Source of the DNA: Paragordius varius | Taxonomy: Eukaryota > Animalia > Nematomorpha | Length of the DNA stretch: 64,000 bases | Direction: 5' to 3' | NCBI GenBank assembly: GCA_964247055.1 | Contig: OZ176053.1 | Span: 9,362,001-9,426,000 of the forward strand | Part shown: in pieces, positions 1,115-61,779 of the stretch | How the letters are laid out: every line of letters begins with the position of its first letter | Position numbering within the stretch: the first letter of the stretch is position 1 | Notes under the pieces: generated by a model | Database searches by the model: none | Told to the model about the DNA's origin: nothing | Seen by the model: the letters and a program-made list of their open reading frames with translations, nothing else | Made by a program: the position numbers and the translations under genes

Positions 1115-1117
1115 TAT

Positions 1118-1134: not shown

Positions 1135-1149
1135 AAAAAACGCTTAGGA

Positions 1150-4407: not shown

Positions 4408-4408
4408 A

Positions 4409-4659
4409 TGAAATTTATTTTCGAATTAGAATTAATAATTTTCATTTATTAAAATTTCGTTATATTTATACTTCTTATTAGTTATAATTTTAACATGCAT
4501 GTGCGTCACAATTGTAAGAATATGTCTTTTATTCTACGAATATTTATATGAGAATTCCACGAATAATGACGCACGAACATAAACGCCAAACGCGATTAAT
4601 AAAATAATAATATGATGTATGATAATATAAAATGATGCAATGTTGTAATATCAACTACA
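4409..4659 (-). repeat. 5' LTR of the gypsy element
   Basis: Direct repeat of 871-1114; followed by the PBS. Confidence 0.88.
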
Positions 4660-19480: not shown

Positions 19481-19589
19481 AATCTTAAAGCATTACAATA
19501 AAAACAAATTATATTCATGGAGCCAATGTCGTATAAAATTAAAATTGCTAAATAAATTATTCTGCATTAAATTATTTTACCGTGGTAAA

Positions 19590-31000: not shown

Positions 31001-32741
31001 ACTTGCTACTTCGTCCATAATTACATCACCATTTTGTTCAACTTCTTTATTGTTATGTTTTTGGTTACTAGGTAAATTCTTAGCGCTTTTATCAGGCGTT
31101 AAAGGCAAGGTAAAACAATCTCTCTTCAGCAATTTTTTGGTTGCGACTAAACTACCCCGTGGAAAGGTATCAAGATGTGCCGTACACGGTAATGGTAAAT
31201 GAAAAAAGGTATCATTGTTATCATAAAGACGCTGTTTTAAAGTACCAGAATCGTTTTTTACCAACAAGGCATCATTTTCAGTAATAATATGATGACCATT
31301 TAGCACAGTTTTTGTTTTCTTGGACGGTGATGTTTTACGTGCTAATTTAGCATTCTTCGAAATTAGGTTATCTTCAGAACTGTTTGAATCGCTTGATTCA
31401 GTGTTTAAGGAAATAGAGGTCGTGAATGATGATGAAGAGATTTGAGTTAATACGTTTCGAATGGCAAAATGATTGATATAGTTGAAAGGGGTGTGATGCA
31501 ATTTTCGGGGTTTCTCAGTTCCTGAAACAATAAAAAATGCAATCATGAATTGACAAATTATAATGCAGATTGTGAAATAACTATTAATGGGTAATTAATT
31601 AACAATATATTAATCAAGGCTGATGTGTGAAAACAAATTTTATGAAACACAGTTAGCACACTGTATTATTTATATATGGTAAAAGTGTTTTTAACAAGTA
31701 AAAATTGGCAGCATTCACAACTTAGCCATCAATATCCATGAGAATTAGCTTTTTTTAAATAATTATCTGAGAAAATCACTGATTTATTTAAACCATTATA
31801 ATCCATTTATAATATTAATTGTGTTCATAAAAAGATATATAAATTAAAAAAACGCTTGTTTAGCAATGAAAATAAGCATACTTTTCAATAATTCATCTTG
31901 ATGTTGAATAGCATGATGTAGATTGTGAAGTATTAAATCCATTCCCAAACAGCCATCAACCGGTTTAATTAGGGGTAAAATCAGAGGATGATTGACGAGT
32001 TGTTTAACATTATTTTTACGACTGAAAAAAATAAAAGATTAGTTAGAGAGCATCTCATAAAATTTTTATTACATTAAATTATATGTGGCCAAACAGTCAG
32101 TTTAAATCGTATTGTAAATTAATATTTAATAGATCATAAATTATTACATTTTCCGATAATCCAATCCATCTGCATTAAGTGCAACCAGTGTTTCAGAAAA
32201 ATTTTTGATAAAATTATAGTTTATTATATGATTGAATTCTGAAGTATCATCTGTTTTATAATTGTTATTGGTATTCTCTGCTTCAGGAGATATATCAGAG
32301 TCGGATAAAACTTCGCCTTGTTCTAGTTCAGATATTAAATTTGAATTAATGTTGGCAGTAGAGTTTTGTATTAATGCATTTGTCAAATTTGGTTTGACAT
32401 CTATTTCTATCGAGAATAGAGCAATCTGGCGAATTTTTTTAGAACTCGTTATTTCAGCCCATCTCTAATTTTATGTAATTTATACTTAATATATTTCTGA
32501 AAATTTGCATCCTCTTTTAGAGGAATGGAAAAGTTATGGATTAGATTAAAAATATTTTCTATAACAATGGGTTTAATTTGACTACAAATTGCACAATACC
32601 AAAGATGTTCATTATAGTGGTTCGGCATAGAATCTTGTAAAGATCGCAATTCAAAAAATGTAGGCAATTTAATTTGTGGATCATTCTAGCAAATAAATTA
32701 AAATATACCCAATAAGTTTTTGCTGGTTTTTTGTGTTTCAT
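25029..32741 (-). CDS. REXO5: DEDDh RNA exonuclease, REXO5/NEF-sp-like, ~13 exons
   Basis: Phase-consistent exons: 32148-32462, 31882-32021, 30927-31521, 29743-29939 (ExoI LLALDCEMC), 28570-28708 (DYLTQWSGLT), 28157-28378 (ExoII ILCGHSLNFDLDALKMFHPYVIDTS), 27513-27584 (ExoIII GHDSIEDAR), exon from 27116, and last exon 25029-25219 (IINALPSNTLIVM...LWMKIKR*). 5' exons 32709-32741 and 32486-32685 are less certain. The linkage near 30.1 kb and at 25.8-26.7 kb is unresolved. Confidence 0.8.
29032..29612 (-). mobile_element. Hairpin-subTIR element, copy 2 of 3, in a REXO5 intron
   Basis: Reverse-complement homology to 9233-9793 and 60536-61108. Confidence 0.8.
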
Positions 32742-35049: not shown

Positions 35050-35125
35050 TACAGTTCAAATTGACCCTTGAACAATTTATATTCACCCTCGAACAATTCA
35101 AATTCACCCTTGAACAATTCGAATT
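35050..35125 (+). repeat. Degenerate 21-bp minisatellite related to 50618-50840
   Basis: cccttgaacaattcaaattca-type units, preceded by a similar tatacca.tt.ca.ttcaa leader. Confidence 0.6.
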
Positions 35126-35392
35126 CATCCTAAAAATAAATTATATGTTTTTGAGAAATATAACTCTTTATTAATATGAAATACATCTTTACGGCATAGT
35201 TTATTATTTTTTCAGTAATATTTTAATTTTAAAACATAATTTTATTATTTAATATATATATATATATATATATATAGGTAATATAATTTAGAGGGTGAAT
35301 TTGAATTGTAAATGATATATATATATAATTTGTTTGATTATACTCGCCGAAATCGTGCACTACTTAATATTATTTATGGGTTAATCAATATA

Positions 35393-36901
35393 TTATTTAT
35401 TGACATTTTTGTTTATATTTTTGTCATCAACATTATTATCCTTCGCAGTAGTTCCTCCATGTATAATACCTTGATGTAAACACATTAGATTGGAAAGCAC
35501 ATCCCCTGGAGCTAAGGAGTGGTGAGAATCATTGGAAGACAACCCTTTTGTTTCTGGAATAGTTAGTGTCTTTCTAGAGATTTTGTACGAAAGCCTTAAA
35601 TGCTTTTGAGAAGTACTTGAAGATTTTTTAATTAATGTGGCTGGGTCAATCAGGAGATGAACATCAGATGATAGATTACCAGCATTTTTTTCAAAAGATT
35701 CAGGTATTAAAAAGTCTTTTGAGCCAGGTGTTAAAGTTGGTTTTTCATGGACATTAAACTTTCTTACACAATTGTATATCCTCTTAAGATCTCTAATAAT
35801 ATTATGATATTCCTTTAAATTCTCATCTAATGCGTTTAAAGCAACTTCTATCACTGCAATGTCTTTTGACCTAATTGTAGGATTTTTCATTGTTTCATAA
35901 TATGAAGTTGATGGGTTAGGGTCATCGATTAGTTCATCTTGTTTTTGTGATTTGTCTTTTTCTTTATTAACTTTCATTTTATCCTCACATTTTTTGTCAT
36001 TTTGCCATTTAATATTTTGTTTGACAGTTATTTCAAGGTTAGTTATAACAACGGCTACCAAAAGGTTAGATAAGAGAAAACCTCCTATTATAATTACAAT
36101 AGCAAAATACATTTTCGCTATCCTATAATAAATTGGATGTATGGCTAAAAGTTCATTGTCTGGATCGCTTATGTTTTCATTATGGTTATTTTTAAATTTA
36201 TTTAGCAAATATATCCATCCACTTTGTGTAACGCCCGTAAAAGTTGAAAAAGAGGCTCGACCAAGATCTCCAAAATCTTCATTAAAATCGGCACCAAAAA
36301 GTTTAACACCCCACAAGGAGAGTAATAGGGATAAATATATAATAAGAAGAACTAAACTCGTAATATCTGGCAATGATTGGATGATAGCCTTTATTATAAC
36401 TTGCAGTCCCTGAATCATATTTAGTATACGGAGAATGCGCATGGATTTGGCAACACGAACAAGCAAAATAAATTGGCGTCCAGGATTTTTTCTTTGGACA
36501 ACTGGGCTTATGAGCATTAAAACGACAATTAGAAAATCCACCGTATTCCAAAAATCTACTAACCAAAATAACTCAAAACTATAATACCATTTTAATAATA
36601 TTTCGAGAATGAAGAATGCTAAAAGACTTGTTTCGAATATCTGAAAAGTCTGATAATATGTTTCTGCCAAATTTTCAGATGTTTGTAGTCCAATAATTAT
36701 TGTATTTAATATAATTGCAGCAATAGAAAATCTTTGAAACCAAACATTATTAAGTAGTGGTCCTATGACTTGAACCTTTATCTTTTCATCCACTAGGTAT
36801 TGATCAAAGATGACCTTATTTTTCTGGCAATTACTGTTTTGTATGTTATTTTCAAAATCGGTTTTTGGAGTTATCGAAACTTTATGAGCTAGATTATCCA
36901 T
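35393..36901 (-). CDS. CATSPER4: Intronless six-TM voltage-gated cation channel, CatSper4-like (502 aa)
   Basis: S1-S3 (FILEILLKW..F..FW...WNTVDFLIV), S4 with periodic basic residues (VRVAKSMRILRIL), IIQSLPDI linker, pore FGDLGRASFSTFTGVTQSGW, S6 NLLVAVVITNLE, and C-terminal LNALDENLKEYHNIIRDLKRIYNCVRKFN matching the CatSper4-type coiled coil. Paralogue assignment is from recalled motifs. Confidence 0.78.
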   Translation of the reverse strand: MDNLAHKVSITPKTDFENNIQNSNCQKNKVIFDQYLVDEKIKVQVIGPLLNNVWFQRFSIAAIILNTIIIGLQTSENLAETYYQTFQIFETSLLAFFILEILLKWYYSFELFWLVDFWNTVDFLIVVLMLISPVVQRKNPGRQFILLVRVAKSMRILRILNMIQGLQVIIKAIIQSLPDITSLVLLIIYLSLLLSLWGVKLFGADFNEDFGDLGRASFSTFTGVTQSGWIYLLNKFKNNHNENISDPDNELLAIHPIYYRIAKMYFAIVIIIGGFLLSNLLVAVVITNLEITVKQNIKWQNDKKCEDKMKVNKEKDKSQKQDELIDDPNPSTSYYETMKNPTIRSKDIAVIEVALNALDENLKEYHNIIRDLKRIYNCVRKFNVHEKPTLTPGSKDFLIPESFEKNAGNLSSDVHLLIDPATLIKKSSSTSQKHLRLSYKISRKTLTIPETKGLSSNDSHHSLAPGDVLSNLMCLHQGIIHGGTTAKDNNVDDKNINKNVNK

Positions 36902-39772
36902 ATATGTTGCGAATCAAATATTTTCTTGTAATAAAGCTGATGTATTTGTTATCTTTCGGAGTTATTCTCGTCCGTTTGTAATGGACAAAATAATAATAAA
37001 ATGTTGAGCTTTTATAATATTACCATAACTTTAATATAGCAATTGGTGGGAATACTCTTTATTTATTAATTAATTCATATATAGAAAAACAGGCTGGTTG
37101 TATTCTATTATTTTTATGGTCCTTTGAATATATTTTATTATATTGTTTTAAATTATTATAAGATTGGCAGTTGGATCCGTTTTTTGAATTGAGTCTAATA
37201 TAATAAGTGATTTGCGTATTACTATCTGTAAACTATTAAACCGAATTAATCTTATATCATTGTTGTTATTAAGGAATATTAAAATCACTTAGAAATGTTT
37301 TTTCTATTCACGTATTATTTTGTTGGAAAGTTCCAACATGACAACTGCGCTCACATCCTTTAAAAAATGCATAATATTTATTAATTTTACAAGTTAATAT
37401 AAACGTCTCCGAATCATTAGACAAAGCTTTAATCTGCGTTAATTTATTTTCTCATTCCCCCTTTTTAAAGAGTTATAAAATTATATAAATTAATCGAATC
37501 CTCATATAACATTATTGAGAAAATAAAAAATTTGAGCTATTTTAAGTGCCATGTTAAGGAGCCGTTGGGTAGACTCAATAAACATGTGGGTGAGTTATAT
37601 CAATAAACCGGCTCAAACACTATTGAACTCATATTTTTACCTTTTAAGAATGGCTGTGGTTTTTAAAGACACGCCCAAAATTTTCCCATCTTAACTGAGG
37701 CCATAAGATACTAGAGGATTTGAACTTATATTGGCTTATCCAAAATGACTATAATGGTCATTCATGTGGCCCTAAAAGTAATGCAAAAATATTTCAAAAA
37801 TATAATACACCTTTATGGTTAAATTTTAAAAACGGGTCGGTGAACTGTTTGCATATATTTTTCTTCCATGCGTTTTTTGAAATACATATCATCATTCTAT
37901 ATAAAATAGTTTCCCCTGACGGTAAACATCAAATTTGACATACTATGTTATTCACTTAATAGCTCCAGAATTTAACTATGAAAATAAAAAACTAGTAAAT
38001 TGTCAATTTCCATTTAAATAAGCTAACTATAAACCAATTTTTATAAATACCTTATAGGACCACTTTCCCCATTAATTACCAATCTTATACCATGCAAAAA
38101 ACCACTAAAGTTTTGACTTTAAATTTTGTGTTTTACGTAAATAATGCACATGGTCCATAAGTATCACCTCAGCCACCGAATAATCTTTATGCTTTTGATA
38201 ATAGCCAATTCATATATTAAACAAGACTGTAAGTTTAATCCGCGATAGCCACAAAAAATTGGCGGACCGCACCACGCATTATCATATAATACACATATAT
38301 TAATAAATATATATATTTATGCATTTTAATATTCACACTTTTCAACTTTTCTTAAATATATGTAAAGGGGTATGTTAATAAAAATTCAGTAAAAGGGGTA
38401 TGTTAATAAAAATTCAGTAAATTCTACATTAACCAGCTGATAATTATTGATCAGAATATCAATGTGCTTTTCATCTGTAAAATTTAGAAAGTGAAATAAA
38501 CCTCCGTGTTTAAACCCACTTTGTATAAAGTGTGAATTAAAAAATTCCCAAAAATTGTGGAACCAAAGTACAACCTGAGAAAATAAAAACGCAAATAAAA
38601 TATAATATAAGTGATAACCTTGATCTATATATATTGAATTTACCACCAATCATCATTACCTTATGTTTTTAAATAAGTTAATAATAAAAAACCCAATTTT
38701 ACATAAATAATCAAAAGACTTAAAGCTTTTTTTGTAATTGTCTCAAAATTAACTTCATTTTAATAGTCTCCTTACAAAATATTGATGAGATGAATATCTT
38801 GAATAAGAGTCAGAATATCTTTAGCTCATTTTATAAAGTTTCAATAAAGATGTTAATTGATATACAGTATTACTGAGTTTCATTGATTAGTGCTAGATAA
38901 GATTAAAAGAAAATGCCATTATTATTAAATTAATGTTAATTTTTTTCACTTATATGGCTATTTGCCAAAAATAAGGCTCTTTGCTCTATATAAAATAAAA
39001 TTAATAACTAGCAATGTATATTTACTGTACTCATATTTATTATGAGCGACTTAGCTGTCAAAACTTGTCGTGCCACAATCGATAAATTTTTTCTGCGTCA
39101 GAGTAAAATTTAATGTTAACTAAATTGATGAAATTAACTGATATGCATTACCAAATATTTTGGAGAAACAATATGTAGGTCATTAAAATAATATCCTAAT
39201 AATATATATTTAAACATAGTGAAAAATGTCATGGTCTCATCCTGTTGGGTATGGCGTTTAATAATTATATAGGAAAGATATACTTTTATGGTAATAGGTC
39301 CTATCGCAAATTAAGCGCAAATTATGGTAGATAATCTTTTTCTGGAAGGTAATTCATTTAAAAAATACTAATCTTTTATTTTAAAGAACCCAAATCTAAG
39401 TTGAATTCAATTATTTGTCCCCAAAAGTCTCAAATTATTTACGCAATGGAGGATAAAATAAACACAAAAAGATTAGATTGTGTAAAGACTAGATTATAAC
39501 AACATTCCTAAAACAATAGCGAAATATAAATTTGGCAAACTTTTATTTAAACACAATTGACCAGTTTTTATTTAAAAATCATTGGTACTTCTTTATATGC
39601 TAAAATTTGCAGCTTAAGATAAAAGGGAATTATTTGGCTAAAATATTATTAAACAATATATAGTAAAAATACTTAAAATTACATTTTAATTATCCTATTA
39701 ATCCAATCAAAATAAATAGATTCTGAAAACCCATATAAAGTTTTAAAAAATAATTTTAATACATAAAGTTAA

Positions 39773-42700
39773 TCTATATATTTATAAAAATGGAAAATGC
39801 TGGCTTTGTGATCTGGTACAGGAAAACCGGTAGACCCAATCAAATCCAAATATCGAAAAAATATAATCATTAATAAATGTCCCGACAATAGCTTCGCCCT
39901 TTTTTTGAAATAGGCTCCCAGTTCGGGCCCACCCCGTATGAAAAACGGGTTTTTTTTGAAAAAAGAAGTCCACAAAATCGTGTTTTTGAGACAATTTTCC
40001 GGAGAACGTGTTGGACCATTCAATTTCAAATATAATTTTTGTTTACTTATTTTCGATTGCGCCGAACATAGTCGAGCCACTTTTTTGATTTAGGCCCTCT
40101 TTTTACCCGCTCCCCCCGTAAAATGCCATTTTTTTCAAAAAACAAAGTCCACAAAAATAATTTTTTAAATCGATTTTTCGTCCTAGGTATGAGACCTTAA
40201 AAATTCAATAAAGATTCCACGTATTCCCTGTTAAAAGGCAAAAATTTTAGTCCACCGTTTATTTGATGATAGCTGCTGGGTAAGGAGCTACCCGCTAAAA
40301 ACTGATTTTTCATATAACTTTGTGAACTGTTTCCGGAAAACCGGTGATCCCAATCAAATCCAAATATCGAAAAAATATAATCATTAATGAATGCCCCGAC
40401 AATAGCTTCGCCCTTTTTTGGAATTAGGTCCCCAGTTCGGGCCCACCCCGTGTGAAAATTGGGTTAAGTCAATTTTTTGGAGAACGTGTTGGACCATTCA
40501 ATTTCAAATATGAATTTTGTTTACTTATTTTTGATCGCGCTGAACATAGTCGAGTCACTTTTTTGATTTAGGCCCTCTTTTTACCCGCTACCCCCGTAAA
40601 ATGCCATTTTTTTCAAAAAACAAAGTCCACAAAAATAATTTTTTAAATCGATTTTTCGTCCTAGGTACGAGACTGTAAAAATTCGAGAAAGATTTTTCGT
40701 ATTGCCTGTTAAAAGGCAAAAATTTTAGTCAAGCGTTTCTTTGATGATAGATGCTGAGTAAGGAGTATCTATCATATGCATAGCATGTTAAAAGATATAT
40801 GGATATTAATACATTATTTATCCTCATCTATATATTTATAAAAATGGAAAATGCTGGCTTTGTGATCTGGTACAGGAAAACCGGTAGACCCAATCAAATC
40901 CAAATATCGAAAAAATATAATCATTAATAAATGTCCCGACAATAGCTTCGCCCTTTTTTTGAAATAGGCTCCCAGTTCGGGCCCACCCCGTATGAAAAAC
41001 GGGTTTTTTTTGAAAAAAGAAGTCCACAAAATCGTGTTTTTGAGACAATTTGCCGGAGAACGTGTTGGACCATTCAATTTCAAATATAATTTTTGTTTAC
41101 TTATTTTCGATTGCGCCGAACATAGTCGAGCCACTTTTTTGATTTAGGCCCTCTTTTTACCCGCTCCCCCCGTAAAATGCCATTTTTTTCAAAAAACAAA
41201 GTCCACAAAAATAATTTTTTAAATCGATTTTTCGTCCTAGGTATGAGACCTTAAAAATTCAATAAAGATTCCACGTATTCCCTGTTAAAAGGCAAAAATT
41301 TTAGTCCACCGTTTATTTGATGATAGCTGCTGGGTAAGGAGCTACCCGCTAAAAACTGATTTTTCATATAACTTTGTGAACTGTTTCCGGAAAACCGGTG
41401 ATCCCAATCAAATCCAAATATCGAAAAAATATAATCATTAATGAATGCCCCGACAATAGCTTCGCCCTTTTTTGGAATTAGGTCCCCAGTTCGGGCCCAC
41501 CCCGTGTGAAAATTGGGTTAAGTCAATTTTTTGGAGAACGTGTTGGACCATTCAATTTCAAATATGAATTTTGTTTACTTATTTTCGATCGCGCTGAACA
41601 TAGTCGAGTCACTTTTTTGATTTAGGCCCTCTTTTTACCCGCTACCCCCGTAAAATGCCATTTTTTTCAAAAAACAAAGTCCACAAAAATAATTTTTTAA
41701 ATCGATTTTTCGTCCTAGGTATGAGACTGTAAAAATTCGAGAAAGATTTTTCGTATTGCCTGTTAAAAGGCAAAAATTTTAGTCAAGCGTTTCTTTGATG
41801 ATAGATGCTGAGTAAGGAGTATCTATCATATGCATAGCATGTTAAAAGATATATGGATATTAATACATTATTTATCCTCATCTATATATTTATAAAAATG
41901 GAAAATGCTGGCTTTGTGATCTGGTACAGGAAAACCGGTAGACCCAATCAAATCCAAATATCGAAAAAATATAATCATTAATAAATGTCCCGACAATAGC
42001 TTCGCCCTTTTTTTGAAATAGGCTCCCAGTTCGGGCCCACCCCGTATGAAAAACGGGTTTTTTTTGAAAAAAGAAGTCCACAAAATCGTGTTTTTGAGAC
42101 AATTTGCCGGAGAACGTGTTGGACCATTCAATTTCAAATATAATTTTTGTTTACTTATTTTCGATTGCGCCGAACATAGTCGAGCCACTTTTTTGATTTA
42201 GGCCCTCTTTTTACCCGCTCCCCCCGTAAAATGCCATTTTTTTCAAAAAACAAAGTCCACAAAAATAATTTTTTAAATCGATTTTTCGTCCTAGGTATGA
42301 GACCTTAAAAATTCAATAAAGATTCCACGTATTCCCTGTTAAAAGGCAAAAATTTTAGTCCACCGTTTATTTGATGATAGCTGCTGGGTAAGGAGCTACC
42401 CGCTAAAAACTGATTTTTCATATAACTTTGTGAACTGTTTCCGGAAAACCGGTGATCCCAATCAAATCCAAATATCGAAAAAATATAATCATTAATGAAT
42501 GCCCCGACAATAGCTTCGCCCTTTTTTGGAATTAGGTCCCCAGTTCGGGCCCACCCCGTGTGAAAATTGGGTTAAGTCAATTTTTTGGAGAACGTGTTGG
42601 ACCATTCAATTTCAAATATGAATTTTGTTTACTTATTTTCGATCGCGCTGAACATAGTCGAGTCACTTTTTTGATTTAGGCCCTCTTTTTACCCGCTACC

Positions 42701-42957
42701 CCCGTAAAATGCCATTTTTATCAAAAAAAACAAAGTCCACAAAAATAATTTTTTAAATCTATTTCTCCCCCAAGTAAACAATAAATTAGTATGAATGCAC
42801 CGTTTTAAGATTCCTATGAAATCATAGCTATTAAATATTTTTTCGAAATAATCCACATATGTAGATCATTTTATTGTCCCTTTTTTCAAATAACCCCCTC
42901 CCCCCAGAAGTCCGAAGGACTTCCTCGGGCTGCGTAGCAGCACGAGATTTACGCTAG
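39773..42957 (+). mobile_element. Head-to-tail array of a non-autonomous Helitron (1054-bp period, three 5' termini, one 3' terminus)
   Basis: A|TCTATATATTTATAAAAATGG at 39773, 40827 and 41881. Hairpin CTCG-G-GCTGC-GTA-GCAGC-A-CGAG (42924-42946), then CTAG|T (42954-42958). Each unit holds a ~514-bp internal duplication. Confidence 0.85.
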
Positions 42958-44287
42958 TTAATTTATAATTGATGTGTTGTATAGTAGTATTAACGATTTG
43001 TATCTGAATTTTTTGCAAACAAGTTTGATATACAATTTAAAAAAGTTTTTGGCAGTACTGCAACATTCGTAGACATTTACGTTAAAAATCGCTCTGAGGT
43101 AGATAACTGATAATGTTAATAATATAAAGCGTTGTTATTTGGAAGCATGATTAAAACGGTATAAAAACGCTTTAAGATCACAAAAAGATTTTCTGTATTT
43201 GATTCCACCTGCTAAATTTTCCTATCACTTCTTCATACTTCTGTTTATATGAGTTAGACTTAAATTGAGGTTACAAATAATTCATATAAAACCTTCAATA
43301 CTTTTTTATATTTTTGCAGAATATTGTATTTGGGAGAAATCTTTTAGCATAGTGTTTATATTCATAAATAAACCTGTCTTATACAGTTTTTTGGTTAAAA
43401 TTTCTTAACCCTTCTCCTGTTTAAAAAGTACAGATTTTTTACATGCGTATTAGGTGTAAAATTGGGATGACCACAGGCCTCTTATCAAAAAAATGAAAAA
43501 ATATGTAATAAATCATAATTATTGCAAAGGTTAGCAATTGTATAACATTAATGCACCGGAATTTGGAAAAAATCTTATGAAAAATTAGATATTATTTTTT
43601 TTATGGAAAAACCTGAAGGTAAAAATCTAGACAACTTAGTGTTAGTGCATTAGTCAAATATCAACGATAATCATTTTTTTTCTGTTTATATTAATTTTAA
43701 ATGTGATTTATTGAAATTAACTTAATTTTACCGTTAGAATAAAAACACGAAATTTTGAAAAGAAGTAATTGACATGGAGCCTTTTCTCAAGACTAAATTT
43801 TAACTATTTTGGCCTATTTATAAAAATTTTATTGCGATTATGAATAAATTTTAATTAATAAACAATTCTAGGTTTCTTTAAACATTATTAATAAAGTCTG
43901 ATGATTATCACAATTTGAATCGAAGCATAATAAAATTAAGAAAAAATGGCGGTTAAAAAGTTTTAGATAAGTATATTTTACAATATATTTTTTTATTTGA
44001 CTTCGCCTAAAAATTATATTATATAAAATGTTTGGCCCAATATCAAAAATATTTGCTTAAAATACCCTTAGATTACAAAAATATAACAAAAAGCTATAAA
44101 ATAATAACTTAAATCCAATCGAAATTTTCAGGTAGAATGCTTGCTAGAAAGCGAATGTAGTCTTAGTGTTATAGTTGGGGTATACGCCTTGAGTATTAAT
44201 GCATTTGAATCTTTAACATTATGGTTGTTTTGAAACGAACAACTGATTATATAAATCAGATGATATCATCTTTTAACTATTTCTAAC

Positions 44288-47200
44288 ATGCTTATAATCC
44301 AGGGATTTTATTCGTTGTGCAGAAATCTTCGTCCCTTACATACTTCATCCATTTTGTTCCTTAGAAAAGGCACATTAATTGACCAAGCTAATATGAAAGA
44401 AGGTTATGTGCCTAATCTTGATCAAATTCTTGATACGAACGACGGCTATACCCATTTACCACTCCCTTATCACAAAACCGGTGGTAGAGATCTGGAAACG
44501 GGTTAGTTTATTTTTATAATTTTAAGGTCACAGAATAAATCGACGTGGTGGCGGGGGTAAGCGTTATTATGTGATTCCTGATTATAAGCGCGTTCAGTAT
44601 GGACAAGAACCATTTCATGAAAAGGTATATTTTATGTATATTGTATTTGAAAGTATTGAGACAAACAATTATTTTTATGGTGAGAATGTTCATTAATAAG
44701 TAAAATGATATAAGCTACGAGCTTAGAACATTTTAACCTAAGATTCGCTACAAGGAAGTTAATTTAACGTCTATTTTTGACATTTTGGTTTTTTCATCAA
44801 TCTCACCTTCATAATGGTCTTGCGAATATTTGCCGATGGCTGAAACAAATAAAATTATATATAAAGCCGTTTTCACAAAAAGCTGAAAATTATAGTGGAG
44901 AAACGAAAAAAATATTAAAGATGCTTTTAATCAACTATGATACAAAAATCCGACACTCATTATTCTGTCCTGATCAAATATGATGATATATAATCATTGT
45001 TCCAAAAAATTTAGATTAACTCTTTTATTAACATTTAATTCAAATATCTACCAAGATTGATAGTACCATTATTCTATTATAGGATACTTTTTAAAATATC
45101 GATGGATGTAAATTCATTTCAATCCATACTAATCATATCATTCGTCTGGCCACTTGGAATATAACATCTTTAACCAGAAGGAGTCAGGAAATAGCAGCTT
45201 TGCTCTTCTCCAAGAACATCGAAATATGTTGCGTCCAAGAAACTCGCTGGAAGAACACTGGTTCCAAAAACATTCTAGATTATAAATTATTCTGGTCTGG
45301 ATCTAATGGCCGTTCATCAGGTGTCGGAGTTTATGTCAAAAATTCCATTTTATCCAATATCATATCCATCGATTACTGTTCTGAAAGATTATTAGTATTA
45401 AAAATTCAAATCAACAAAAAATCTTTCATATTTTATCAGTATACGCCCCACAAATCAATTGTGATTCAAACTGTAAGGATTTATTCTGGTTGGCTTTATA
45501 TGAAAAAGTCACTGCTATTCCACACACTGATTTCATATTTATTGGGGGTGACCTAAACTCTCACTTTGGTAAAGAATCTTTACATTCAGTACATGGAGGT
45601 TTTGGAATGGATGATTTAAATGAAAATGGTAAAATATTATTAGATTTCGCAAGTAATAATAATTTATCCATCATTAACACCTTTTTTAAAAAAAATGATA
45701 ATAACTTGTTAACCTATATATCCGGCACAAATCGCTCGATGATTGACATAATTATGTCAAGAAAAGAAAACAAATCCCATTTTAAAAATATTAGATCTAT
45801 CCCCGCTCTAGAACTACAGCACAAACTCATTATTGCTGAATTATATAAATCTACATCAACGCAATCACCCATTGGACAAAATAAACCTAAATTTAGATAT
45901 AAAAAATTAGTCGATAATAATATCAATAATAGATTGAAACTCGACACGGAAAGTTCCCTTAAATTAAAAACAACCTCTCCGGAACAACTCTGGAATTCCT
46001 TAAAATATAGCTGCATTGAATCACTAGAGAAGAATGTTGGGAGAATGAAATCTAATAATAAAAAAGCATTTAAATGGTGGTGGCAAATATCCCTGATAGA
46101 TATAATTAAGAAAAAAAAATCTGCATTCCAAAAATGGAAAAAAGAAAAAAGTGCTGACAGCAAAATAAATTACCTCCAAACAAAGAAAGATTGCCGTAAA
46201 GCGATCAGAGCATCGATGAGAAAAATGGGTGAAGAAAAAGGGAAGGAACTAGAAAATGCCATATCTTCTCAATCTGTATATAGATGGGTAAAATATGATA
46301 ATAATATAAGGGCCGAAACAAATGCAATTAGATTACCCAATAATACCATAACCCACGACGCCCAAGTTATAAAAGCCACATGGTATAACCACTATTTTAA
46401 TATTTTTAATAAACCTATAATACCTATGGAAATCACGAACCCTCACCCAACATATTCTTCATTCCAACCATTTACTAATGATGAAATAGAATTTTGTTTA
46501 AACAATTTAAAAAGTAATAAATGCCCCGGTTTATCAGAAATCACAAATGATGTATTCAAAGCCCTAGATCATAATTTATTTTTGGACTATTTCAAAAATC
46601 TTGCGAACAACATAGCATTAAATAATATCATACCCTCTGATTGGCTGAAAAGCTACACAATTCCAATTTATAAGGGCAAAGGAGATCGTTTTAACGTTTC
46701 CAACTTCCGTCCCATACGCATCTTAGAACATGGTTTTAAAATCTTTGAAAATCTGATAGCCAACAGACTCCGTCGACACTGCACCATAGATTCTATGCAA
46801 TTTGGATTTTCAAAAAACAAGGGTACTATAGACGCAATATTTATAATCCGCCAATTACAAAATGCTCACCTGAGAAATCTTCCTCTCCACTATGCGTTTG
46901 TAGACTTGGAACAGGCTTTCGACTCAGTCCCGCAACACCTGATTGCTTGGTCGCTCAGAAGGCAAGGTATAGAGGAAAATATGATACAAATAATAGAAGC
47001 ACTATATAAGAACACCTCAACTGTAATCCGTACAAGCGTTGGCGATACGAACCCCATCCCACTTAAAAACGGCCTACACCAAGGTTCTATATTAAGCCCC
47101 CTTTTATTTATTCTAATTATGGAGGAGATCACAAAAGACATACGAAAAGGCTTACCTTTTGAACTTCTGTACGCTGATGACTTAATATTATGCGCCACAT

Positions 47201-50200
47201 CTGCACCGGAATTAATGGAAAAGTTAAATTTATGGAAGGATACCCTTAGTAAATTCGGTTTGAAGGTAAATACATCAAAGACTAAACTAATGTGCGATGA
47301 AAACAGGACAATAAAATGGCCCTGCTCCGTGTGCTCATTAAATGTAAAGTCAAACTCAATAAAATGTAACAAATGTTTAAAGTGGGTACATAAAAAATGC
47401 TCCACTTTAAAAAGTTTATATGATAATAAAAACTTTATCTGCCCCTCGTGCACTACAACAAATACATTAACCATAGAATCCCCCGAACCCTCCACTTCAT
47501 TCGAAATTGTCGACAAATTTACATATCTAGGCGATACTTTGGATGCTGGTGGTGGTATAGAATCGGCCTTATCGCATAGAATCAAAGCCGCCTGGAAAAA
47601 ATATCATAGTCTGCGCACAATAGTAAATAATAAGTACGTTTTACTCAGCTCAAAGGCAAAAATTTTTATGACGGCTATACGTCCTGCTATACTATATGGT
47701 ACGGAAACATGGCCTATGACTAAATCAAATCTACTATTACTGCAAAAGGGTGAGCAAAAGATCCTAAACGCCATTCTTTTCGCACATAACCCTAACATAT
47801 ACAATTTCCAAGCCAAATTTTGCCCCTATCAAACTCTAAAAATTAAACCAATTAATACAGCTATCCGGGAATACCGTTTGCGTTGGGCTGGTCACATCTA
47901 CAGAGCGCAAGACACAAACTGGATCAAGCTCATACAGTCTTATTCAACCAATAATAAAAACAAAAAAGGAAGACCGTATAAAACCTGGCAATCCACCATT
48001 CAAGAAGACCTAGATTCTCTTAGCATCGATATCGAACAAGCTCAAGATAGAAACAAATGGAAAACTCTAACACGCTTACCTCCTTTGAAAGGAGAAAATA
48101 GCGTATAAAGGTGATATGTAAATTCATTTATTATATGATGTTAATTAAAATCATAATCAATAATAATTTTAGGTCATCCAAATTATAAACAATTATCCAC
48201 TGTACAGTGCTAACCTTGCCCTAGTAGCCGGAGGGATGATGAAACGTTGGATAGTTGCTACGGAAAATATGAAAGTTGGTGATATTATCAAATCATCCGG
48301 TATTATTCCTAGAATTCCAGGTTTTTAATATGATAATACATAATCTTATAATTAATAAGCTATAAGTATAAATACAGAGCTAAATCATGTTTGTAAAACC
48401 CTTTTTTCATGGGTTATAGAATAGAGATAATAATCGGTAAAGAATACGATTTTTTATATTTTATTTAAACTTATAATATTTTCTCATTACAATCAATACA
48501 CTCACATTTAACAATGATTGCAGTAAATTCTAGGGAAAAAATGCATAGATCTAATATTTTAACTTTGTGAGAATGTGATTAGCCGACCAACATTTATATT
48601 CAATAATATTTTTAACAGTTCGCGCAATAGAAGGAGAGGCTCACCCCTTAGGAGCTTTACCATTAGGCACCATTATTAGCAGTGTAGAAAATCGGCCAGG
48701 TTGGGGCGCCAGTTGGGCAACGTGTGCTGGAAGCTTTTGTCAAATTCTTAGGCATTGTAAATCGCCAAACGCTAAAGGTATCATACTTATGCCCATAATT
48801 CATCATCATAAAACCGCGGGGACCTGGAAATAGGACTTTGTTGGCCACTTATGCACATAATATTTATTGTAATTGACGGAATTTTTTATTCAAAAAAGTA
48901 AGGAATCACGCATTTATAAATCAAGTTAAAGTAAATGGCAAAGGCGCGTATAAATGATTTTTGGAATTTTTTATTATGCAAAATCACGGCGGATTTTTCA
49001 ATAGTTTATGTAAGAATTATTGATTTAATTTAATATTTTATTGTACGAAATTAATCGGATTTATTTGTAAAGATAGATAAAATGTATTAATTGTTCATAG
49101 AAAATATTAAATTTTTGAGATGATCTCATCTAATTTATTTATACAATCTGATTGGTGTATTTCATAATAATATATAAATTAGACGATATGACAAAGCTCT
49201 GATCAGTATGAATTGTAATTACTTTTTTGGTTGGTTGCGAATTTTTTACGCATGAAATGATTATACTTATTTTATACAAATTTATTTGACTCAAAATTAG
49301 TTAATAAAAGCGTATTGTTAGTATGGCTCGGACTCTTATACCGTGTGTGTGCGCGAAAGTTTGGATCCCAAAACTACGCAACTCATTACTGTCAGTTACT
49401 AAGCAGGTAGTGTTAAGACTTACACGGGTCCTTATTACAATAATATCCTTACCCTTTAATAAAGGAAAAAAGCTAGGCTCTATTTGTTAAACATATAATA
49501 TCGATCACAATCATTAGATCCAAATATACAAAGCAGTCAAACGACAAATTCTGTCGACGATTACGTTGTTCTCCGACTCCCTTCTAAACTTGAAGTTTGT
49601 GTCAGTAAAAAGTGTATTGCAACTGTAGGCCGATGTTCGAATGTTGAACACAAAAATATGATCGTTGGTGGTCCTATGCAAAAGCTATATTTAGGGTACG
49701 GTATATGCATTTTCTTTTTTATATCTAAACTATAAAATGGTATATTTGAGATTTACAAAATTGTATACAATAAATATTATTTTCTAGCTAGGATCTAAAT
49801 TTTACAATATAAAGTTTTAGTGCAAAAAGTTTAAAAATATATAAATTTCTTAACACGGTTAGAACAGGTTTACAAATTTGAAAAGAAGTGTAATGAATGC
49901 ATTCATTCGCAAGTTAAATGTTGCTTAATACTAAATAAATATTTCTCTTCGATAATAATGCATACATTATTGTTAAATTTTTGAAATTATGTCCTCTTTA
50001 TTTATTGTATTATCATAAATATATCTTATCTAATACATTACATATGTGCTATTTACGATAATTAGAATATTTGTTAATTTTAAACAAACAAACTTTTACT
50101 TATGCCAAATTTAAAAAGTTTAATTTATTTAGACATCGCCCAAGAAGTGGATTATGGCATAGAAAAGATGGTACTCATGGACGAAAAATATATCCTACAC

Positions 50201-50572
50201 CCCCCATGCGAATATATGATGCACTAAATATGGCAAGTCAATTTGAGAACCCCATAAAGCGTTCAGAGTAAATTTTACATTAACATAAATGTGTATTTCT
50301 AACTTCTACTATATATAATTTTATATTTAACAAGATATTACATTGAATATGCCAAACAAGCTACTAAGGATAAAAAGGAAAAGGCAACGGAAAAAGCCAT
50401 TTTTCTTAAAAGAGTTGAACGAAAGCGAAAACATATAGCAATAAATGCATACGAACGTACAATCAAGGATCCTACCATATCCAAAAAAGATAAAATTCAA
50501 ATGTTTATGGTTACACCTAAAAAGATTAATTTAGATCCAAACAATCAAAATTTTGGTGTACTCTCGAGATAA
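44288..50572 (+). CDS. MRPL2: Mitochondrial ribosomal protein uL2m (MRPL2), 6-7 exons
   Basis: Exons 44288-44501, 44527-44624, 48173-48320, 48619-48777, 49518-49695, 50133-50267, (50335-50572), all GT-AG and phase-consistent. Spliced product contains [62 protein letters not shown]...[39 protein letters not shown]. The last exon is optional (in-frame stop at 50269-50271 if unspliced). Confidence 0.93.
45120..48115 (+). mobile_element. Near-complete RTE-clade LINE (APE-RT-PHD) in MRPL2 intron 2, sense orientation
   Basis: Exact 14-bp TSD atgtaaattcattt (45106-45119 and 48116-48129). APE ([33 protein letters not shown]), RT ([26 protein letters not shown]), Cys/His finger, [11 protein letters not shown]. 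Only one lesion seen, a 1-nt frameshift near 45430. Confidence 0.93.
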
Positions 50573-50617: not shown

Positions 50618-50840
50618 TTATATATACCATTTGCACTTCAAGAGTGTCCTTGAACACTTCAAGTTGGTCCTTGAACATTTCAAGTTGGTCCTTGAACAGT
50701 TCAAGTTGGTCTTTGAACAATTCAAGTTGGTCCTTGAACAATTCAAGTTGGTCCTTGAACAATTCAAGTTGGTCCTTGAACAGTTCAAGTTGTTCCTTAA
50801 ACATTTCAAGTTGGTCCTTGAACACTTCAAGTTGGTCCTT
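50618..50840 (+). repeat. 21-bp minisatellite (ccttgaacaattcaagttggt, ~9-10 units)
   Basis: Directly visible tandem units; they generate spurious heptad ORFs on both strands. Confidence 0.9.
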
Positions 50841-51261: not shown

Positions 51262-51335
51262 TAAAAGGACCAACTTGAAGTGTTCAAGGACCAACTTGAA
51301 ATGTTCAAGGACACTCTTGAAGTGCAAATGGTATA
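51262..51335 (-). repeat. Inverted partial copy of the 21-bp minisatellite and its unique leader
   Basis: Reverse complement matches ~50622-50700 (tataccatttgcacttcaagagtgtccttgaac...). Confidence 0.85.
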
Positions 51336-51578: not shown

Positions 51579-54443
51579 TTATAAATACAATGCATAAAGT
51601 TTGGCCTCCCAATCATAATTAAATTTTGGCACGAAACCAGCCTCCAAAATGTCTGAAAATCCTTCATCCATTGATGGTTCTTCATATTTATTCCTAATTA
51701 TATATTTTAAATACGTTTTACCATTATTAAAATTGGTAATTTTAAATTTTGAGAAAAATATTTTATCCATCCGACAAGGAAATGGAATAAAGTCAAAAAT
51801 ATACATAAAATATTACTTAAAAAGTTTAAAAACTAATTCGGGCACCGATGGTTTATTGTAGGCGGCTAGCAATAAATTTTCAGAATCCTCTCCATCATCA
51901 TGGGTAGAAATATAGTCGCTTACAATAATATCATTATCTTTATTATTATTGGGTAATTTTATGGAGCTTGTTAAAGCTCTGCCTAATTTATTGTTATGGA
52001 CATAGGCTAACGTTCTACGAAACCTTTCATTGTGTAAACATTGTTCATATGGTGTGTTCATTTTTATCCCACGCACTTGGATATTATATTCTTGAGCTAA
52101 TTCCATATACAGTTTACGAGAAATTCTATCAGGGTTTGTATTGTCAATTATGATGGAGTGTGCTGTAAGTTAAACACGAAATTAATTTGTATTTTAGGTT
52201 ATTTTTGTAAATAAAGGTATACAAAGGTTTTTTGTGAGAAACACGGGCAAAACGAACCAAAATTAACAATAAAAATTACAAAGGTTATTTTGACGCTAAA
52301 AACTTTTCACCCTCCCTATATGTATATTTTTTCATGCATGTTTTTTAGAAGATATATCATATAAACTTCAACGCATGGCCCATTTCAACAGTTTTAATCT
52401 ATAAAAGTGGTTTTAAAAATACAATCATAAAAATTTCTCTGGTTGTGCACAAAAGGTAGAATATTATTTTGCAAAAAAAGATATTTACTCACAAAAAAGG
52501 GATACTGTGATTTATGACAACGGTAGTTTTTAAAAACACTAAAGAAACTTCTCTAAAATGGATATCTGGAAATGTTGATTGGAGCAAAAATTAAAAAAAA
52601 AGTTTAATTAAGAAAAATTAAATATCTTTTTATAGTCGTTTATTATTTGTTGTGAATTTATAAACAAACTTTTTTTAGTTAGAATTTGCCGACACTTTAA
52701 TAAACATTTCTCCTTAGACTTGAGTGTATCCATATCAATTTTGGCGTATTTTCCATTGGTTTGTTTAATTATTTGATTAACAAGTGTGCTTTTACCAGAT
52801 GCTGGAGATCCAATCAATATAATCATCTAATATATAAAATACATTTTCACTTTGGAATTAATTTTATTCTATCTCATTATGTATTCAAAAGTAACGTTTT
52901 TTATATTTTGTATTTTTTCGAAATAATTTAAAATATCCAAATTTTTTCAGCACATTTGCCTTTATTAACAAATAATCTATTATGCAAATTCAATGTAAAG
53001 AAAATATAAAAACTGAAATTTTACTATTATCATGCAATTTTGCATAGTTTTTACAAAAATATTATATATTATAGCTTTTTGTGTAACGTTAAAAAAAGTG
53101 TATAGATAACTTCCATTTCGCACTGGTAATCAAATTGAAATGGTCGAAAGTGATTTCGTTGTAAAAAATTTTGGGGGTCAAATGTAGGAAGTTGATATGG
53201 AATCTTTAAATACAAATCATGAAAATATTCTTCAGGTGTATAAAATTTTAGCCCTGTGTTTAGGGCAAAGAGGCGATCGGCACACGAAAAATCCCTTTTA
53301 AATTTTTTCCCCTTAAAATGATACGCTTCTCTTCCAGCTGCGTCTATTGTATAAATATAATTTAAAATATATAGCAAGCTAAACTGTTTATTTAAACAGG
53401 GTAAATTTAAATATAATTATTTTATTTTGTGGGCTAATATTAAAAAAGATATAGTGATTGATGGTAAAATAATATTATCAGTTAGATATTTAAATTAGTA
53501 GGATATATAAAGAAACAAAAATACTGTTTACATTGAATAAAGGTCTTGTCTAACGTGAATAATAACGCAAAATGAAAAATTATGGTATTACTGCAACTTG
53601 TGTAAATGGAGAATCAAGCCTTTTAAATAAAATTATTTTTTGCACGTCTTTTATCAAATCTGCATGCGGACATTGATAATTTAATTATAAACGTTTAAGG
53701 GTTATATATAATAATCTTAGTTAACACTTATATGGTTACAAAAGAGATAATTTGTGATATAAATCCTGAAATGAAGCTAATTCACTAATAGTGAAATTCG
53801 ACAAGAGTTTATCAGTGTTCGCATAATGCTTTTTTATGCAAATTCAAAGATAGAAATAATATGTTTTTAAAAAAAGAAAAAAATACCTCCTACATAAAAT
53901 GACTTCTCGATATCAACTGTAATTCCATCCATTATAATTTTTGTTAAATATTGCCACATTCCAATATTGGGTTTCCTAAATATATCGTCACTCAAAGCAG
54001 CCAAAACTGTAACGCAAGCGCCTTCAGGAAAAAGAGATTTAACTATTCTTTCGATACGAATTTCAAAAGTATTTAGATTAATATTTCCTTTTTTTGATAA
54101 TAAACCTTTCTAAAATTATTTAATGTATACTTGATTCGTAAAAACAACAAAATTACAACGCTGACTATGGATTTTATGAATTATATTGATGTCACCATGG
54201 TTGCATAATTCCCAATCATCCACATTTTTAGGAAAAACATTTCCAGATTTAGTAGTAATTAACGTTCCATCCAAGTCGAAACATGCAAGCTTTATTCTAG
54301 ATAATTTTTACCTCCTTCGTGAAACTTCTGTTATTGCTTTGATATATAAAAAGAGATCCGGTGTTGGTCCAACTACCATTTGTGTCCGGTTTTTTAATAT
54401 AATTTGTGATACTTTCACTTTTAATTTTTTTTGCTTTGGACAT
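51579..54443 (-). CDS. PNKP: Bifunctional polynucleotide 3'-phosphatase/5'-kinase, 7 exons
   Basis: Exons 54312-54443, 54131-54289, 53887-54109, 53111-53343, 52670-52826, 51817-52162, 51579-51693. HAD motifs [40 protein letters not shown]; P-loop GSPASGKST; IIDNTNPD; EEPSMDEGF. Confidence 0.92.
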
Positions 54444-57587: not shown

Positions 57588-60426
57588 AATTGGTTATATT
57601 GATTAAAAAATGTAACTTGATATTGGAAATTCTTATTATCTGGTCTTGTTGTTTCAACTATATTAAGCATGGCATCAATTTTACAATGCAAACGCCCATC
57701 AGCAATAAATCTTGATAACTCTCTGCAAAATAAAACATTAGTTTAAAAAATTATGAAAACTCAAATGGGTGTGGTGTGTTTATGTATAAATATATGATAT
57801 AAAAATATATTGCGTAAAAATAAATTTGTATTCATTAATATAGTTTTAAAACTATATAAAATTATGCAATCCAATATTTTAACTTATTCTATATTAATAG
57901 TATTTATACTCATCCTTAGAAGAAAAGATATGAAATTAAGTACGATGGTTAAAATTTAATTTATCAATATAAAGAAAAATATTTAACTCATCATCAATAA
58001 GAATATGCGAAAATCACCTATCAATAAACTGGGTACTGACACCAAATGCTTTAGCCATAAAATCGAGCGATAAACTTTTGTAGGATTGTAGGAGTTGACT
58101 GTAAGCTAAAATACGCATTTCACGGCAATAGTATCTGTAATGAGGTGCCAAATATCGATCATACTTCAATATAGTTTCCACTTCGGCTAACCACAGAATT
58201 TAATTTTTTAAAAAACATATTTATAAAAATTTATAAGCTTATGTGAATAATTTGAATAGTGAAACAAGCAAAAATAAAATACAAAAGATATTTAAGTCTA
58301 TTCAATTAACCTAATTTCTGGAAAAATACATCATATCGACAATCATATAATGAGTGTAGGTATTCACGAATCAAAGGTATCCCATATAAAACCTCGGTAA
58401 TTTCAGCTCCCTTTATAATCTATAATTGTAAAATTAGGATTGTATATTTACAAATTAATTATGGTGAAAATATACAACAAATCAATAAAAAACAATAAAA
58501 ATCATAGAGCTTAGCATAAAAATTATAATGTTTTAGCATATAAATTATAAAAGGGTTGAATTTCGGATCGTGATGATACATTAAGTTTGTTTTAAATGAT
58601 ATTTAAAAATAATGATTGTTTATTTCAAACGGCTAAAATATTTAGATGTGAGGTATAAGAAATTATATGATTTTATAGATAAAAAAAACCTAATAACAAA
58701 ATATATTTATACTCATATAGAATTTAATAATCGTAGCAATATTCGAAAATAATTCAAGTTTTTATATTTTTTAAAACAATTTTCACAAAATATAGGATAT
58801 TTAGGGCTAATATACACATGTGCACATTAGTTTAAACCACTGGCTTATAAAACGAATTTATTATTGTTTACCATTTGATTTAGGTATAAAAAGAATATTT
58901 CAGAGTTTGCCGAGTAGCATATACTAAATGGTTTTAGTTTAAATGTGTATATTTATGTGATGATTAATTTTCAATATTGAATCAAAATAATCATGCTAAT
59001 TTTAAATTAACAATAGAACCGACATCTAAATATAAATCATTGGACCTAAATCCAATAGATATTAAAACTTTTCGTAACAGTAAAAATATGCAAAACTAAA
59101 GACTAAAAGTTAACTTAATACTAGTGGAATCAAAAAAGTTTAGAATTCGATCCCGATATATACCATATGTTTAAATTAATTACAAAGATAAAACGTGAAC
59201 ATATATTATACGATAGAATGAACCTTTGATTTTATATCTGTACGTGGAATCGCAACCACACTACATATCACAGCATATGTGATGTAATTTTTATAATCCA
59301 TAAGTTCGTAGGAAGTAAAAGTCGAAACCGTATCCAAAAACAATCGACTGGCCGTTTTAAAATCTCGAATACACATGGAATAAATGGCTTGATAGGCTTT
59401 TAGGCGATTTCTTCGGTCCCAATCTCCACCCTCTTCAATCAAACTAACACATGTTTTTTAGGAAAATAAACTTTAAATATTATAATGGTATTTAAGTAAA
59501 TTTATGGAGTTTTTTTAAAAAATTTTGGAGCAGAATGAATTATTAATTGGTTGTAATATTGCATTATATTTTGTTTATATTTGTTAATATTACTATCCCA
59601 CAGAAGTATTAAAATGTTACAAAGAGTAATCATTTTCTATTTAAATTGAAAAAAATGTAATTTTAATACAAGGTTTATATAAAACTAGCTAAATGTCATT
59701 GCATAAATAATTTCAAAGGTATTAAAAGATTGTCTTGATAAATATTAAAATATAAACTATTGGGCAAATTTTTAATAGAATGATTCTTTGAATATAACAA
59801 TAAACAAACCTCTTTGCCTTCTCGATATTTCGACTAATAATATCATGGTCCAAATAAAACAAACCAATTCTTATTTGGAAAAAAACCAAATCAAGTCTAT
59901 GACCGATAGCAGTAGTCTTTTCATTCGCATATCTAATTGCAGTCATCGTTGCTTCCTACATTATATAATTATAAATAAAAAATACATTCTAAAAAAGTAC
60001 TAAAATTATATTATAAATAAAAAATACATTCTAAAAAAGTACTAACAATAATTATATCCGCTTACTTTATCCCCGATTTTACATAAATATTCAGCTTTAG
60101 CCAATAGTGCAGCTCGAACCTCGGTATCTCCTGAATTTTGTTGTGCATCAGATATGGCATCTTCAAGCTCCTTTAATTTTTCTTGATTATTAATATTCAT
60201 ATTTTCAAAAAGTTTTTCATCAAAATGCCATTTTAGATCTTCACATACATTTTTATAAAACGGTGCCATATCTAAAAATTTTAAATATAAAAAAACGATT
60301 GGATCTAATAGCTTCTATAATTTTTTCAGTTAGCGCTTTATCATCTTTATACTTCGGAGTTTTCAACAGAAAGAGCCATTGTGCTATTTCTAAATCAGGG
60401 TTCTTTGCTAATGCTTCTTGTTCCAT
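57459..60426 (-). CDS. PSMD6: 26S proteasome non-ATPase regulatory subunit 6 (Rpn7), 8 exons
   Basis: Exons 60297-60426, 60066-60271, 59810-59955, 59224-59443, 58311-58419, 58018-58186, 57617-57722, 57459-57527, all GT-AG and phase-consistent. Product contains [82 protein letters not shown]. Confidence 0.95.
57547..57584. repeat. (TA)n microsatellite in the last PSMD6 intron
   Basis: Visible run; similar runs at ~30314-30335, ~33650-33672 and ~35252-35276. Confidence 0.9.
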
Positions 60427-60535
60427 GTATGAATGATAAATTGATGGTAAAGAAATAGCTGTATTTGTTACAATTTTTATACCGTAAAAATTACAACAAT
60501 ATTTTATATATGCATATATATAGACATTTAAGACA

Positions 60536-61108
60536 ATTCAAATTGGGGTATCTAAATAGCCCAAAATTAAAATTTTTGAAAAACTACTGAAGGAAACGGT
60601 CCCAATATAAATTTATGCTTTTTTACTGAAATATATTATATAAATATGCCAAAATATCTTGATAAAATTTTGTTTTGAAAAAAAAGTTCCACCTCAAACT
60701 ACTTCGACGCTATTTTTATTTTACAAAAATTTTGCAAAATATCGTCTTCATTTAATTATAAGGGTAAAATTAAAGCTTATTTTTTTATAAATTACATCTA
60801 ACATTGATAAAAATAGAAAAAGCGGTTTATTTTGTATTATTTTTTAATTTTACAATTTGACACATGTCACGTTGACTAAATTTTTACCTTTGAGTTTTAG
60901 CTCAAAATAAGTAATATCAAGTATATTGTATATTTGAATAAAATTTTTTATATATTTCGGTTTATTTTCTTATATAAGTGCGAAGTTTTGCCATGTCGAT
61001 TGCTTCCATACTTTCTAAATTATTGGATTTTAAACAGGCCTAGGGTATCCAACTACCCCAATTCGAATCGAAGGATTAAAATGAGTGTGTTGTATCCAAG
61101 TGTTAATA
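60536..61108 (+). mobile_element. Hairpin-subTIR element, copy 3 of 3, ~110 bp upstream of the PSMD6 ATG
   Basis: Homologous to 9233-9793 and 29032-29612. Confidence 0.8.
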
Positions 61109-61779
61109 ATAAAACGTTCTCTAAGGCGGGTTACTGACCGCATTTTTCCCATTATAATAATATATAAATATGGCTAATTACACTGGACAATAAATGTTGA
61201 CTATAATTAAGTTCCATTCTTGCAAAGTTCATAAATATATCTGAAAAAAATTGGTTTAACACCTAAGAAATATTTATTATTAGAGTTTATCGAAAATTTT
61301 TGGCCCCTATTAACTATTAAACTCGATATTTTCAAAATTTAAAGTTTAGATATAGAGCTTTTTATTTTCAATTATTTGAAAGGGCCCAAAATAAATCTTT
61401 TGAATAATAGTTAGTCATTTAAATCAATCAGATGTAAAAGTTATTTGGCTTAACATGGTCAAAATTTTATATCCTTAAGTCAAAAATTTTCAACAAACTA
61501 ATTAAAAAACATATGAATCATTTAATTATAAATATTGTGGGTTCACATTTGTATAAAATTTTAAATTTTTTTTTAAAAAGCTTCTAGTTTGCTAATTTAA
61601 TATAAATTATTATTATCATAATTATTTTGCCTAATGGATACAAAGCAATGATTACAACTGTAAATTTATTATCACAACCGCAAAAAAGATCACCCAATAC
61701 CTTAAACTATATTTTTAGTCTTTAAAATAAGCCTTCTTATACCATTTCCTAGTTAAAAAACGTTTTTTAGCCATTCGAA

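Follow-up and report, generated by a model that had tools for sequence, protein, structure and literature searches.

The MRPL2 locus of this hairworm raises the question of whether a segment of only 25 nt that interrupts the reading frame is a genuine spliceosomal intron and, if so, how it relates to the sub-30-nt introns already known in animals. The segment, located on the plus strand at positions 44502-44526 of the window (the whole 64-kb stretch of DNA analysed here), reads GTTAGTTTATTTTTATAATTTTAAG and has GT..AG ends. It lies in phase 1 within a Gly codon (G/GTTAGT...TTTTAAG/G). Cutting it out joins G to GT and leaves the MRPL2 frame open (311 or 389 aa), whereas keeping it gives ...DLETG*, with a TAG straight after the split Gly; the original prediction of a frame-restoring 25-nt piece was thus borne out. 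Possible cuts at this site (GT/GC..AG, 10-200 nt) were compared by local scoring with a profile built from 120 homologue segments. Seventeen cuts restored an open frame, among which the 25-nt cut scored 40.9 bits and the runner-up 22.7. The other 16 could in principle point to a longer intron, with its donor farther upstream (43 or 46 nt) or with a different acceptor, but each of them cuts into conserved sequence (RDLET or the Gly-rich loop), falls 18 or more bits short of the 25-nt cut and misses the orthologous intron position described below; a longer intron is highly improbable.

Composition and splice signals point in the same direction as the frame. The interior of the 25-nt segment has a G+C content of ~4.8-7%, against 32-39% in exons. 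In the window's genes, GT..AG stretches of 20-32 nt start at 76 of 4,217 exonic positions, and none of these 76 has an interior G+C of 10% or less. The donor GTTAGT agrees with GTRAGT at five of six positions. A candidate branch A is predicted at 44518-44519 (-9/-8) in TTATAAT, followed by TTTT, which is the sole pyrimidine run upstream of the AAG acceptor. XBP1-type introns are 23-26 nt long, and the size of the segment would therefore suit non-spliceosomal removal of the IRE1/XBP1 type; a tRNA-endonuclease-type mechanism belongs to the same group of explanations. An IRE1/XBP1-type intron is expected to have two CNG/CNG stem-loops, but no stable structure was detected (z = +1.08) and no paired CNG/CNG hairpin loops are present at the ends. 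A U12-type intron needs an RTATCCT donor and a TCCTTAAC branch site; the donor here is GTTAGTT and such a branch site is absent. The GT-AG ends also lie at the site of an orthologous U2 intron, and both non-spliceosomal removal and a U12-type intron appear extremely improbable.

The surrounding gene was modelled on the plus strand. Exon 1 (44288..44501) begins with ATG and probably encodes a mitochondrial targeting region; searched alone, it had no match in PDB or Pfam. Exon 2 (44527..44624, ending in HEK) has a weak uL2 match and was placed by tblastn of homologues. It is followed by intron 2 (44625..48172; 3,548 nt, phase 0), the position of which equals that of intron 2 in the nematode Soboliphyme, and by exons 3-6 (48173-48320, 48619-48777, 49518-49695 and 50133-50267/50271). 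The resulting six-exon model encodes 311 aa without an internal stop and contains five GT-AG introns of 25, 3,548, 298, 740 and 437 nt. A sixth intron (67 nt) is probable; its donor overlaps the apparent stop codon, and it would lead into a probable exon 7 (50335-50572), suggested by its ORF, codon score and splice sites, and would lengthen the protein to 389 aa. In this region (50268-50572, plus strand), the probable extra exon adds a Lys/Arg-rich C-terminal tail of ~78 aa that is unmatched in homologues. Searches with the spliced models took one exon at a time, joined translations being scored only in local scripts. Exon 3 matched solved uL2m chains (E 5e-10), and tblastn placed homologue matches on every exon, in order. 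Judged from these similarities, the gene is MRPL2. Profile and HMMER searches recovered no hairworm MRPL2 orthologue; the best local match, P0122, is a transcript that lies nearer to Lineus. The CatSper4 locus of the hairworm Gordionus showed no synteny with MRPL2.

Exact spliced alignment of MRPL2 orthologues onto their own loci placed intron 1 at the identical codon and phase in four other phyla: in the starfish Asterias (1,030 nt), the nematode Soboliphyme (59 nt), the horseshoe crab Tachypleus (3,801 nt) and the nemertean Lineus (1,566 nt). This conserved phase-1 position in the Gly codon therefore identifies the 25-nt segment, on sequence comparison, as an old bilaterian MRPL2 intron that has since shrunk. 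MRPL2 intron 1 of Glandiceps (450 nt) is annotated 4 nt off the conserved site. At that locus (L004:721-1170), where the annotation lies 4 nt downstream, a GC-AG intron (G/GCAAGT...CACAG) can be read instead, and it falls precisely on the ancestral site.

We compared four sequencing runs over 44260-50250 (5,991 letters). Three of them (X2, X3 and X4, from two studies) carry the segment and are genomic, since introns are covered. In X2 the 25 nt are present on both haplotypes, with a T>C difference at 44514 (intron position 13) and both ends intact. X4, which is ~6% diverged here, spans 44260-44878 with a single contig in which just 10 letters are gaps, too few for the 25 nt to be missing there. 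The check for an assembly artefact that accompanied the prediction therefore came out in favour of the segment, and with contigs of three runs carrying it, including both X2 haplotypes and the diverged X4, and with an SNP segregating inside it, the likelihood that it is an assembly or long-read error is vanishingly small.

The runs also bear on whether MRPL2 is a pseudogene here, in which the 25 nt would be an insertion that disables the gene, or what is left of a decayed intron that can no longer be spliced, with a functional MRPL2 located elsewhere. In X9, the sole RNA-like run, nothing was placed on the MRPL2 exons (44260-50250), a LINE has inserted into intron 2, and a paralogue less than 85% identical would escape the run comparison. 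Against this, the remaining exons and splice sites are intact, and the depth of X2 at MRPL2 (~388) equals the single-copy baseline. Among the SNPs listed (40 of 506), the five in the core domain (44543 and 44555 in exon 2; 48657, 48674 and 48749) are all synonymous when the gene is spliced, for an expected fraction of 0.23-0.27 (P~0.001); over all listed MRPL2 exon SNPs, again among those 40 of 506, five of eight are synonymous (P 0.02-0.04), and the three non-synonymous ones all fall in the N-terminal 59 residues. We take this synonymous bias, drawn from 40 of 506 SNPs, as indicative. Further points argue against decay: the GT..AG ends coincide with an ancestral intron site, the segment persists in the ~6% diverged sample, and a similar pattern recurs in the essential PSMD6 gene and in PNKP. 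Because the segment is present in both haplotypes and in a diverged sample and the listed core SNPs are synonymous, an artefact and a pseudogene are both very unlikely. We conclude that 44502-44526 is in all probability a real U2-type intron of 25 nt and belongs to a class of promoter-proximal micro-introns; its excision is inferred, since the RNA-like X9 covers no exon and the other three runs are genomic.

The neighbouring intron 2 had been cited as a kb-scale contrast of ~3.5 kb. Its length is indeed 3,548 nt, but 3,010 nt of this is accounted for by a LINE retrotransposon (45106..48129, plus strand) that carries an endonuclease, a reverse transcriptase and a PHD-like finger. The LINE lies in the sense orientation with an open stretch of 907 codons and is flanked by a 14-bp target-site duplication at 45106/48116. 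In X4 it is missing on one haplotype (an empty site with the joint 45110>48138), which leaves an intron of ~538 nt; the insertion is therefore polymorphic and recent. Thus, what the tiny introns should be set against is introns some hundreds of bases long that absorb transposons, and not inherently kb-scale ones.

Elsewhere, too, the window carries transposable elements. Both its G+C content (~28-30%) and the abundance of Gypsy-, Helitron- and LINE-like sequences agree with the published Gordionus genome, which has 26.9% G+C and 64% repeats (10.1101/2023.06.26.546503). By eye from ORFs, we noted a decayed Gypsy-like LTR element at 1100-4450 (minus strand), a LINE in two parts on opposite strands at 10575-13291 and Helitron-like Rep/helicase fragments at 17100-19500 (minus strand). 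A dispersed element of ~560 bp occurs at 9232-9794, 29026-29612 and 60535-61114 with 80-92% identity, and is placed just upstream of PSMD6 and within a REXO5 intron. At 39772-42764, a unit of 1,054 bp with internal sub-repeats ~90% identical is repeated ~2.8 times in tandem at >99% identity, either because it was duplicated recently or through an effect of the assembly. A 21-bp tandem repeat family (50646-50840, 51265-51324 and 35051-35131) generates spurious long ORFs on both strands. The window also contains a CatSper4-like single-exon gene (35396-36901, minus strand) with its best match in Gordionus (40%, E 1.8e-83), where CatSper4 is also single-exon, and matches of 30-32% in squamates. 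The CatSper4 pore motif is TQSGW in the window, TQNGW in Gordionus and TQDGW in squamates, so that loss of the pore Asp is common to the window and Gordionus. Judged by this one gene, the source of the DNA is likely to be a nematomorph. The window protein is without the N-terminal part of ~270 aa found in the Gordionus model.

MRPL2 is not the only gene in the window with an intron of this size. Intron 1 of PSMD6/Rpn7 (60272..60296, minus strand) is 25 nt long, and its flanking exons align without gaps on residues 6-48 and 50-117 of rat PSMD6, the split codon being residue 49. Intron 2 of PNKP (54110..54130, minus strand) is 21 nt long and contains in-frame stops; its flanking exons match positions 3-54 and 58-124 of Pfam PNK3P, in register. 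At both sites the exons around the micro-intron abut in homologues. Introns below 30 nt at conserved positions are therefore MRPL2 intron 1, as judged from its orthologues, together with intron 1 of PSMD6 and intron 2 of PNKP, as judged from these adjoining exons. PNKP intron 1 (54290..54311, minus strand) is required because the exon-2 frame lacks a Met ahead of the catalytic DLDG; it is most likely 22 nt long, although an open 15-nt alternative exists from the same donor. The 22-nt reading starts at the ATG at 54443 and the 15-nt reading at that at 54379, and an FHA domain is absent in both. A search with PNKP exon 1 gave chance lectin matches only. In a REXO5-like exonuclease gene, a candidate intron 1 of 23 nt (32686..32708, minus strand) is proposed from frame continuity and GT..TAG ends, and an uncertain candidate intron 2, also of 23 nt (32463..32485, minus strand), has an unusual GAG acceptor that is the sole frame-keeping one.

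The sample of the window comprises 23 modelled introns in four genes. Six of these are 21-25 nt long, all of them first or second introns that start within ~313-320 nt of the ATG; the 17 later introns are all 67-3,548 nt, none has a length between 25 and 67 nt, and the median over all 23 is 126 nt. The prediction of a 21-25-nt class alongside kb-scale introns therefore holds in so far as tiny introns sit next to introns of hundreds to thousands of nucleotides, with the kb-scale neighbour being mostly LINE. Micro-introns precede the others in every gene (P = 0.0016 over three full models, in a test that was not blind to the 5' bias). Confinement to the 5' ends of genes is the most distinctive feature of the tiny introns. 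Five of the six are not a multiple of three, and the sixth is the 21-nt PNKP intron with its stops. Donor and acceptor sequences look alike in micro-introns and long introns. TRAY occurs in three of the six micro-introns, against a 32% background, and no branch-point motif is enriched; a lean towards A at -9/-8 (five and four of six, respectively) and T at -6/-5 is not significant.

How would so short an intron be removed? The original prediction held that introns of this class need a modified spliceosome geometry. This requirement is not supported, and the case of myxobolid myxozoans suggests that a changed spliceosome is unnecessary: with median introns of 22-27 nt, they have retained U2AF1/2 and a U2 whose branch-pairing region is canonical (PMC13644364). 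A modified or second spliceosome that serves the tiny class would be compatible with a real intron, and the empty 25-67-nt range among 23 introns and the strict positional split would fit it; however, micro and long introns have similar splice sites and myxobolids splice 22-27-nt introns with an apparently canonical U2 and U2AF, and we consider a dedicated spliceosome unlikely. An Rfam search of the window gave no match, and genes for snRNAs, U2AF, SF1, SF3b and Prp8 are absent from the window.

Most likely, the ordinary major spliceosome would remove the 25-nt MRPL2 intron by intron definition. U1 and then U6 would recognise the near-consensus donor GTTAGT, and U2 would pair with the degenerate branch site TTATAAT, placing the branch A ~8-9 nt from the 3' end and giving a lariat loop of ~17-18 nt. 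The TTTT run may stand in for a polypyrimidine tract, and a sharp rise in A+T relative to the exons may mark the intron. MRPL2 copies that retain it would stop at once and be cleared by NMD, while later introns would stay at least 67 nt long and collect transposons. As for the 5' confinement, our preferred explanation, held with roughly even confidence, is cap- or promoter-coupled pairing of splice sites, which would lower the minimum length near the transcript start; the main alternative is a deletion bias near promoters. The absence of lengths between 25 and 67 nt speaks more for two regimes than for a gradient, although the number of introns is small.

Introns of similar size are known from several lineages. 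The precedents given in the original prediction omitted myxobolid myxozoans. In a 2026 survey of 51 animal genomes, sub-30-nt introns are reported only in myxobolids and Dicyema, and more cases are predicted (PMC13644364). Our literature search found no paper on short introns in nematomorphs. Myxobolid introns (Henneguya, Thelohanellus and Myxobolus) are 20-27 nt long at conserved positions, with genome-wide medians of 22-27 nt (PMC13644364). Myxobolids and the hairworm are alike in being animal parasites and in having GT-AG introns, conserved positions and reduced splice signals (PMC13644364), with weak A residues before the AG (the A lean in the hairworm being not significant) and a short or absent pyrimidine tract. 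They differ in that the myxobolids show genome-wide shortening in compact genomes, whereas the hairworm window is transposon-rich and its tiny introns are first or second introns only; the two are also separate lineages, the hairworm being a probable ecdysozoan. Within the window, a median of 126 nt with six of 23 introns tiny lies above the median of <30 nt that marks genome-wide miniaturisation. In dicyemids, about two thirds of introns are below 30 nt and the median is 27 nt (Dicyema; PMC6543705, citing Ogino et al. 2010). Dicyema and the hairworm both have sub-30-nt introns within a conserved exon-intron structure, but the tiny share is about two thirds in the former against six of 23 in the window, whose CatSper4 is nearest to that of Gordionus.

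The closest likeness in arrangement is with flukes. Microintrons of Opisthorchis felineus form a class <75 nt with peaks at 37 and 90 nt, clustered near the transcription start (PMC6530080). Like the hairworm, flukes have a short class beside kb-scale introns, adjacent and 5'-clustered, in a repeat-rich parasite genome; a lost pyrimidine tract is likewise common to both, and intron definition has been proposed (PMC6530080). The hairworm introns share the 5' clustering but not the length (21-25 nt against ~37 nt in flukes), and the 5' bias is statistical in flukes and absolute in the small hairworm sample of 23 introns. Flukes also have much SL trans-splicing. In a tapeworm study, a 36-nt intron class is placed toward 3' ends (PMC5036155). 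Among unicellular organisms, Paramecium introns are ~25 nt and the short introns of Oxytricha and Stylonychia are 5'-skewed (PMC5014332), and an intron of 23 nt is known from Trichomonas (PMC12316389). Ciliates and Trichomonas resemble the hairworm in size range and NMD-visible design, but they are unicellular and Paramecium has tiny introns only. Lengths that are not multiples of three, or internal stops, suit the hairworm introns to clean-up by NMD, as in Paramecium (PMC5014332). The hairworm class behaves like the fluke pattern at myxobolid size, and matches the full definition of neither.

Already known in animals are sub-30-nt introns, which predominate throughout the genomes of myxobolids and dicyemids, and 5'-clustered microintrons in flukes (PMC13644364, PMC6543705, PMC6530080). 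For the MRPL2 site, the present analysis adds its orthologous position in four phyla, the finding that other samples carry it and that it is polymorphic there, and the LINE account of intron 2. With tiny and normal introns in the same genes, the hairworm allows the effects of position, sequence and machinery to be told apart in a single organism, and so opens the minimum size of animal introns to direct testing. Gene finders with a minimum intron of 30-40 nt would be expected to shorten 5' exons or overlook them, and the number of genes counted as lost from such a genome could be too high as a result. More tentatively, and with somewhat less than even confidence, we propose that the hairworm adds a third lineage to the animals that have sub-30-nt spliceosomal introns, being the first ecdysozoan among them, and that its transcripts have two length regimes, a cap-proximal one of 21-25 nt that uses a cap- or promoter-coupled route and a distal one of ~65 nt or more. 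If this is true, minimum intron length would be set by position in the transcript and would not be a fixed property of each species' spliceosome.
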